DNA of 63,862 nucleotides, the filler included, from Octopus bimaculoides (Eukaryota): NCBI RefSeq assembly GCF_001194135.2. It is 5 parts of 5 records of this genome, joined end to end, with 100 filler letters (N's around TTAATTAATTAA, not from the genome) between each part and the next. Parts side by side here need not be neighbours in the genome. Positions count along the whole stretch, not along the records: positions 46,177 to 62,430 come from NC_069008.1; 4 more parts are not named here. One strand, given 5' to 3'. The translations under genes and the position numbers were made by a program. This document shows, in pieces, positions 46,177 to 46,810 of this stretch. The notes under the pieces are model-generated. The model saw nothing but the letters and a program-made list of their open reading frames with translations. It made no database searches and was not told the origin of the DNA. Within the stretch, counting starts at the first letter, position 1. Each line of letters begins with the position of its first letter.

Positions 46177-46660
46177 TGACACACACCCACACTAACACAC
46201 CAACACCCTTACACACACAACCTAACACCTACACACACTCTAACACACACACCCTAATACACACACTAACACACACACACACACACACATACTAACATGC
46301 ACACCCTAACACACACAAACACTAACACACACACATACTAACACACACACACACATACTAACACACACACCCTAACACCCACACACACCCACCATGACAC
46401 ACACCCACACTAACACACCAACACCCTTACACACACAACCTAACACCTACACACACTCTAACACACACACCCTAATACACACACTAACACACACACACAC
46501 ACACACACATACTAACATGCACACCCTAACACACACAAACACTAACACACACACATACTAACACACACACACACTAACATGCACACCCTAACACACACAC
46601 ATACTAACACACACCCTAACACACACAAACACTAACACACGCACACACACACACACACAG
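46177..46660 (+). repeat. (CA)n-based compound repeat with about 25 CTAAY motifs and a roughly 218-bp higher-order duplication
   Basis: The unit starting tgacacacacccacactaac at 46177 recurs near 46395; six TACTAAC counted by eye. Confidence 0.9.
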
Positions 46661-46810
46661 GCAAGAAGCGTGAGATGACTACATACACAGTGCACCAGAA
46701 TTCCGGTAAATTCTTGACGTTTGGTGGTCTTTTGATTGGTTACGGCTTTTTCAGCGATATTATTTACAAAGCTGAGAATAGACGTACCCTGGGGATCTTC
46801 AGGTACCCAA
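46661..46810 (+). CDS. CERK-like exon ([15 protein letters not shown])
   Basis: cacacag|GC acceptor, CCAA|gtaagt donor, 150 nt: (G)[49 protein letters not shown]. Confidence 0.88.

Follow-up and report, generated by a model that had tools for sequence, protein, structure and literature searches.

The acceptor of a 150-nt coding exon in a lipid kinase gene of Octopus bimaculoides is almost free of uridines, and this state is common to the orthologous exon in Argonauta hians. The window analyzed here, i.e. the whole stretch of DNA under study, comprises 63,862 nt in five joined parts; the exon lies in the part from NC_069008.1 (positions 46,177 to 62,430), which is called the piece below. A preliminary description of this DNA had pointed to an acceptor without a U-rich tract that is preceded by an array of CTAAY motifs, and it had proposed that a microsatellite was converted there into a splicing module. 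The present analysis confirms the observation and supports the interpretation in part: the notable feature is the U-less acceptor, not the 25 motifs. New here is that this acceptor is common to Argonauta; it is a variant of weak-pyrimidine-tract, AG-dependent or repeat-associated 3' splice sites.

The exon and its kinase gene

The exon occupies positions 46661-46810 on the plus strand and is symmetric (phase 1-1); its length and phase are those given in the preliminary description and match those of its relatives. An open frame around the exon begins at 46636, and the exon itself starts with G/GC AAG AAG CGT GAG ATG. It is followed at 46811-46816 (+) by a strong consensus donor (CCAA/GTAAGT). 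Homology revealed two more exons of the same gene on the plus strand, the next exon at 47885-48140 (with a provisional 3' end) and an exon for the C-terminal region at 51334-51473; both have an ordinary T-rich acceptor. The predicted join to the next exon, RYP/IYMLWG, is identical to that in the A. hians protein P0018.

A word-index protein search with the exon alone and with the three joined window exons gave no match, nor did Pfam and PDB searches with the 52-aa peptide. An exhaustive HMMER search with the exon peptide recovered 12 homologues. The exon is 76% identical to P0018 and 69% identical to the second Argonauta paralogue. The comparison with P0018 gave a dN of 0.18 with dS saturated, and the dN/dS of the Argonauta pair is 0.20. 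By homology and by these substitution patterns, the exon is genuine and selectively maintained, under purifying selection.

The nature of the gene was examined through its relatives. The protein P0004 (524 aa, from RNA-seq contigs) contains a DAGK_cat domain (PF00781, E 1e-27). The same domain is present in P0018; in the gene studied here, the corresponding portion is situated upstream of the piece. The best solved relative of P0004 is human sphingosine kinase 1 (SphK1, E 1e-19); the exon aligns to its segment ...LSLAWGFIADVDLESEKYRRLGEMRF, which is a core conserved segment. The nearest named relatives of these kinases are ceramide kinases. The latter carry the CERK-specific PH (PF25382) and C-terminal (PF19280) domains, which were undetected in P0004 and are unlisted for P0018; the C-terminal NCDGD/E motif is shared. 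On this homology it is reasonable to describe the gene as a DAGK_cat lipid kinase and to retain the label 'CERK-like', under which it had first been described.

We also considered that the exon could be unused, either as part of a decaying paralogue or as an unspliced relic, its acceptor having been destroyed by a neutral satellite. The kinase family does have paralogues in Argonauta and Dreissena. Furthermore, no protein, transcript or contig of O. bimaculoides was matched in the collections, either by the searches with the exon and the joined exons or by an exact look-up of the read-through ORF. Nevertheless, we consider this explanation extremely improbable. The reading frame is intact between a CAG/G acceptor and a consensus donor, dN is far below the saturated dS, and the neighbouring exons are intact, with a predicted join that is identical to the Argonauta model. 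In addition, purifying selection acts on the two Argonauta paralogues (dN/dS 0.2), and both have retained the U-poor acceptor.

Several other features were seen in and around the gene. A frame of 182 open codons at 48783-49328 (+) encodes an acidic and Gly/Ser-rich sequence, with a (TGC)n run and an (AG)n near its 3' end; it may serve as the kinase's variable linker exon, for which Argonauta and P0004 offer parallels, although no homology was detected for the frame. A segment coding for GGDGTYCEVLNG occurs twice in the Argonauta locus L013 (14520-14567 and 14792-14926, about 270 nt apart), which represents a small local duplication of part of an exon. No counterpart of the terminal mini-exon (..GLIRAFCC in Argonauta) was detected in the window; it may lie within the N gap at 51991-52405.

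SINE-like repeats are present in the same region. Two copies, at 46915-47024 (+) and, inverted, at 48588-48697, form 110-nt arms that are 95% complementary and 1.56 kb apart, with one copy in each of the introns flanking the exon at 47885-~48140. The pair could form dsRNA across this exon, with A-to-I editing or back-splicing as possible consequences. Further SINE-like copies were located at 47043-47286, 48281-48522, 59642-59782 and 60388-60483. Scans of the piece with ARAGORN (for tRNA) and Rfam, with the SINE-like repeats included, gave no match.

Downstream, two zinc carboxypeptidase (Peptidase_M14) exons were identified on the minus strand at 57231-57446 (E 4e-7) and 60766-61170 (E 5e-13). 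They belong to a convergent neighbouring gene. A weakly matching reverse-transcriptase fragment (RVT_1) at 53692-54003 (+) and a C2H2 zinc-finger ORF at 57667-57939 (-) are probably transposon remnants.

The acceptor and the array upstream of it

The acceptor AG is located at 46659-46660 (CAG/G), and its position and phase match those in relatives. It is the first AG in at least 481 nt. The AGs further downstream, at 46664/5, 46667/8 and 46673/4, run into stop codons if the upstream exon ends in phase 1. Since this is the phase in the relatives, the junction 46660/46661 is the only in-frame acceptor nearby, in line with the original claim. Based on the position and phase that it shares with relatives, this acceptor is very probably real.

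The last ACTAAC lies at 46631-46636 (+), and its candidate branch A (A46635) is 25 nt before the G of the AG; thus the geometry reported earlier was reproduced. The 22-nt spacer between this motif and the AG (46637-46658) consists of ACACGC(AC)n. It takes the place of a polypyrimidine tract, with 50% C and no U, and only 4 T are found in the last 60 nt of the intron. The four other acceptors in the piece, i.e. those at 47884/47885 and 51333/51334 and the two of the Peptidase_M14 exons (minus strand), are ordinary; they are U-rich or, in the latter two, U/C-rich.

A U12-type intron was considered and rejected. Such an intron would have an RTATCCTT donor, no pyrimidine tract and a branch site (TCCTTAAC) situated 10-15 nt before the 3' splice site. 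The Argonauta donors are of the U2 type (GTGAGT, GTAAGT), the window's upstream donor lies outside the piece, and CTAAC is separated from the AG by 25 nt in the window and by 6 nt in Argonauta.

The intron's 3' end, as examined by motif counts, TRF and folding, is a G-poor, (CA)n-based minisatellite that extends on the plus strand from 46177 to 46658. Together with the AG it comprises 484 nt (A220 C211 T46 G7). This is a minimum length, because the 5' side of the array coincides with the edge of the piece at 46177 and the rest of the intron is outside it. A recount gave exactly the numbers reported before, namely 25 CTAAY (23 CTAAC and 2 CTAAT) and six TACTAAC; ACTAAC occurs 14 times. Dinucleotide-preserving shuffles of the array contained only 3.5 +/- 1.6 CTAAY with a maximum of 8, and in the remaining 15.8 kb of the piece there is one ACTAAC and no TACTAAC. 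The excess over the shuffles results from tandem duplication, so the 25 motifs do not count as independent events.

The internal structure of the array reflects this duplication. When cut at each CTAA, the array falls into units of the form CTAAC(AC)n, which measure 12-38 nt and always have an even number of nucleotides; TRF reported periods of 14, 16 and 46. At a higher level, two blocks of about 175 nt with nine CTAAY units each, block A at 46180-46352 (+) and block B at 46401-46575 (+), differ from each other by a single AC indel. By this near identity, block B is a very recent tandem duplicate of block A. The array as a whole is an (AC)n repeat within which a TA-bearing variant was propagated, and the 25 motifs represent a young minisatellite that stems in part from very recent duplication. 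An interstitial telomeric (TTAGGG/CCCTAA)n array, which had been raised as an alternative, was rejected: the seven copies of CCCTAA are isolated and never in tandem.

The visible array upstream of the acceptor contains neither AG nor GT; the six other G are part of TG or CG, and the next nucleotide is always A or C. The predicted minimum free energy of the array RNA is 0 kcal/mol, i.e. no structure is predicted. There is a neutral route to such a composition: when A changes to G in a CA array, the resulting CpG decays to TG or returns to CA. What G there is in the arrays of the window and of Argonauta belongs to TG or CG, plus one AG in the Argonauta locus L008. Since this neutral route exists, the lack of G alone is not evidence of selection.

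The orthologous acceptor in Argonauta and outgroups

In the outgroups, a comparison of the mRNA contigs L009 and L014 with the genomic sequence L001 showed that the orthologous exon is exactly 150 nt long and agrees in position and phase. The intron interrupts its first Gly codon behind base 1 (...ATTG/GAAAATTACG), and the exon ends with ...CCAG/gtaaaa. Two more genomic outgroups, L015 and L016, have the same exon boundaries. The orthologous acceptor in L001, L015 and L016 has an ordinary short T-rich tract. No exon-skipped isoform was found in the P0004 cluster; every transcript isoform recovered includes the exon.

The situation in Argonauta hians is different from that in the outgroups. This species has two paralogues on one contig, P0018 (locus L013, the closer one) and P0003 (locus L008). 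The preliminary description had called for the orthologous intron of other cephalopods to be inspected, and in both paralogues this intron ends in a U-poor, C/A-rich and nearly G-free repeat of 1.5-1.9 kb that continues up to the acceptor and ends with CTAACACAG/GCA. The L013 intron is 4.35 kb long, and its last 1.83 kb (C931 A705 T189 G8) is a mosaic of CACACT, CCA and CACCA-type arrays with the end ...caccaccaccctaacacag/GCAGGCAG. In L008 the last 1.9 kb (C921 A636 T293 G26) contains at least five types of arrays and ends with ...caccactctaacacag/GCAGGCAG. The two Argonauta introns have 3 and 6 T among their last 60 nt, compared with the 4 of the window; in other acceptors of the same genes and in the outgroup L001 it is 20-32. 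Three acceptors allow a comparison of the window with Argonauta, and a U-poor C/A array is present in both lineages at this one only.

Argonauta has the same U-poor acceptor and the outgroups are U-rich at this site; therefore the U-less acceptor is an old trait of octopods. On this comparison of sequences, the U-rich tract seems to have been lost, and a repeat to have been present at the acceptor, since before the split from Argonauta. Because the synonymous sites are saturated, the shared state of the acceptor does not simply reflect recent common ancestry. Slippage, however, enables large arrays to perpetuate themselves.

The motifs of the array have a different history. All three loci end alike, with CTAACAC..ACAG/GCA, and the CTAAC beside the AG is the only recognizable signal that is common to them. 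The Argonauta tracts contain just 1-2 CTAAY and 0-1 ACTAAY; in L013 there are 17 TAAC, most of them within CATAAC. The A of the proximal CTAAC is only 6 nt from the AG in Argonauta, whereas in the window (AC)n expansion places it at 25 nt. Furthermore, L013 has ACTAAC arrays away from annotated acceptors, namely 12 copies at 1392-1838, on the 5' side of its first coding exon, and, in antisense orientation, a cluster at 21-339. CCA-type arrays are common in this locus in both orientations.

Together, these data do not support the proposal that a microsatellite was built into a splicing module of 25 motifs, as the motifs are young tandem copies with few counterparts in Argonauta. The possibility that such arrays are equally common away from acceptors, which had been named as an argument against a role in splicing, applies in part to the motif array, given the arrays of L013. 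It does not apply to the U-less acceptor.

The Argonauta loci differ from the window in their general composition. G-free runs of at least 40 nt cover 25% of the sense strand in L013 and 18% in L008, compared with about 1% for C-free runs; the species of the window shows no such strand bias. The introns of L013 and L008 consist almost entirely of tandem arrays, including (TC)n of 2.2 kb, an 18-mer array of 6.5 kb, (ATC)n and CCA-type arrays, and most of them reach right to the acceptors. A (TGG)n-type sense array of 1.9 kb, which lies within an upstream intron of L013 (6409-8545), is strongly complementary to the CCA-type tract at 18130-19728 that precedes the exon in question. The predicted duplex has -190 to -250 kcal/mol per 356 x 200 nt (median -29), and pairing would loop out four exons.

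Possible modes of recognition of the acceptor

For U2 and SF1 the optimal site is UACUAAC, and AG dependence is characteristic of introns whose pyrimidine tracts are weak. The explanation that we favor, and to which we give an even chance, is that the acceptor depends on its branch site and its AG, has a weak pyrimidine tract and is situated inside a tolerated repeat that is free of AG and GU. From the geometry and the conservation of the site we infer that the proximal ACUAAC (A46635), a near-perfect partner of SF1 and U2 snRNA, would serve as the branch site, and that CAG/G and the GUAAGU donor 150 nt downstream (exon definition) would help to compensate for the missing U tract. Slippage and unequal exchange have raised the repeat unit with its CTAAC to a copy number of at least 25, in part very recently. 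The upstream copies of CTAAC would then be by-products of repeat growth, which are harmless and possibly useful as redundant branch sites. As the tract is without AG, GU and structure, any branch inside it would lead to the same first AG and no cryptic site would be available.

Such a site is similar to the yeast-type UACUAAC or AG-dependent introns in that it combines an ACUAAC at 25 nt with CAG/G and no U tract in between. Unlike these introns, it is found in a metazoan gene with normal U-rich acceptors elsewhere and is a predicted site; it is also embedded in a repeat of at least 0.5 kb, or 1.5-1.9 kb in Argonauta.

Two observations do not fit easily with the favored explanation. The A of the Argonauta CTAAC, at its distance of 6 nt, is too close to the AG for a usual metazoan branch; the branch sites of Argonauta must lie elsewhere, and its CTAAC may be conserved for another reason. 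In addition, the C/A-rich tract persists across saturated synonymous divergence. This hints at a function that goes beyond tolerance.

A third objection is that in mammals CA repeats by 3' splice sites are mostly repressive hnRNP L sites, associated with cryptic or alternative exons; intronic CA-repeat and CA-rich hnRNP L elements have reportedly been described by Hui et al. in 2003 and 2005 and by McClory et al. in 2018. This would argue for regulation. The multivalent array would in that case recruit an hnRNP L orthologue and/or a STAR protein of the QKI/How type, which would tune inclusion of the exon according to tissue, and skipping would produce a kinase without its core segment. We judge this regulatory role to be unlikely. 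The likeness to hnRNP L elements is that long CA repeats immediately precede a 3' splice site, but the elements in mammals mostly repress cryptic or alternative exons, while the present exon is conserved and coding. With respect to STAR proteins, the QKI response element is ACUAAY-N1-20-UAAY, and the window agrees with it at the level of sequence: of the 14 ACTAAY cores, 12 are accompanied by a TAAY half-site at a spacing of 1-20 nt. These cores are not conserved, however, with 0-1 ACTAAY in the Argonauta tracts, and their multiplicity in the window comes from recent duplication. Regulation would also be in keeping with an array that is predicted to be fully single-stranded, with a symmetric exon (phase 1-1, 150 nt) and with a C/A-rich tract that was kept only at this acceptor in two deeply diverged octopod lineages. 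Moreover, long AG-exclusion zones have been linked to alternative splicing in human (PMC1431707). On the other hand, the transcript isoforms of the relatives all include the exon, albeit in species with an ordinary acceptor. Since the exon aligns to the core conserved segment of SphK1, its skipping would probably inactivate the enzyme. The inclusion switch suggested in the preliminary description, for which the relatives provide no transcript lacking the exon, is thus a conjecture.

The role of the proximal ACUAAC as the branch site can also be questioned because the upstream intron continues beyond the piece, where a distal branch point and a U tract are possible. If both were located there, upstream of the array, the repeat would be a spacer that has grown while remaining free of AG. 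Exons with distant branch points and AG-exclusion zones are known, and the window, L013 and L008 all have a zone of at least 100 nt, as defined by Gooding et al. 2006 (PMC1431707). In Argonauta the G-free tracts begin just after a T-rich tract (at ~17890-17920 in L013, gtatgtttttttttctttttctctttcc; at ~8450-8470 in L008). The AG-free zone of L013 extends over 1862 nt from this T-rich tract to the acceptor; the zones of L008 and the window are 1279-1280 nt and at least 481 nt long, respectively. Hence the likeness to the exons of Gooding et al. is a very long AG-free zone with, in Argonauta, U-rich sequence at its upstream edge. The distances, however, are discordant: known distant branch points reach about 400 nt and not 1.3-1.9 kb, i.e. 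the values for Argonauta are 3-5x those of any mapped human case (PMC1431707). The zone is furthermore made of tandem repeats, and the window has a near-consensus ACUAAC at an ideal distance of 25 nt. In L008 the tract itself includes an AG that precedes the acceptor by 1.28 kb and follows the T-rich element. A distant branch point is quite improbable in view of these differences.

The preliminary description had also cited the pairing of AC and GU repeats in fish introns as a precedent. The array would then bridge the intron by pairing with a GU-rich tract near the 5' splice site and would thereby replace U2AF2. Lin et al. 2016 (PMC4691745) described structured (AC)m-(GT)n introns of teleosts and lamprey that are U2AF2-independent; only vertebrate genomes were analyzed in that study. 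In this fish class AC repeats hide the branch site and the pyrimidine tract, and the present intron resembles the class in AC repeats that run into a splice site and in a fast turnover between species. The polarity is reversed, however. The class is defined by two hexamers, each no more than 50 nt from a splice site, namely ACACAC at the 5' splice site and GTGTGT at the 3' splice site (PMC4691745), whereas the last 50 nt of the intron in the window are of the ACACAC type and contain no GT. The 5' ends of the Argonauta introns are an (ATC)n array in L013 and a 60-nt repeat rich in G and T in L008. For L013 the complementarity to the tract is at background (-32 to -70, median -29). In L008, pairing between the intron's 5' part and its final 200 nt reaches -96 kcal/mol, which exceeds the best of 50 control windows (-85, median -36), but most of this value is explained by composition, as shuffled sequences gave -73 +/- 9.5. 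No partner tract is visible in the piece at an appropriate position; the best partner within it (-81, median -36) lies downstream of the array at 48.9-49.5 kb. We consider bridging of this kind very improbable, and the fish introns are not an adequate precedent.

Finally, the locus could represent an octopod class of 3' splice sites in which a long, G-free, unstructured C/A-rich repeat and a CUAAC substitute for the U-rich tract. Recognition would be achieved by a CA/C-rich binder or by avidity of SF1/U2, the acceptor would have been held in this state over the divergence of Argonauta and Octopus, and the length of the repeat would act as an evolvable dial for the inclusion of an exon that a sphingolipid kinase needs for catalysis. 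We regard the existence of such a class as distinctly unlikely.

If the acceptor is used as predicted, it is a natural example, in a metazoan, of a conserved coding exon whose splicing takes place although the last 60 nt of the intron are essentially devoid of uridines. This state has persisted in both of the deeply diverged octopod lineages, and all neighbouring acceptors are conventional. It raises the question of what substitutes for the recognition of pyrimidines by U2AF65; a consensus branch site, a factor that binds CA/C-rich sequence, and a distal branch point on the far side of a kilobase spacer without AG are the candidates. The locus also illustrates that tandem repeats can grow right to a splice site if they are G-free, i.e. 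if they offer no AG, no GU and no structure. Splice predictors that were trained on U-rich tracts may miss such exons in cephalopods.
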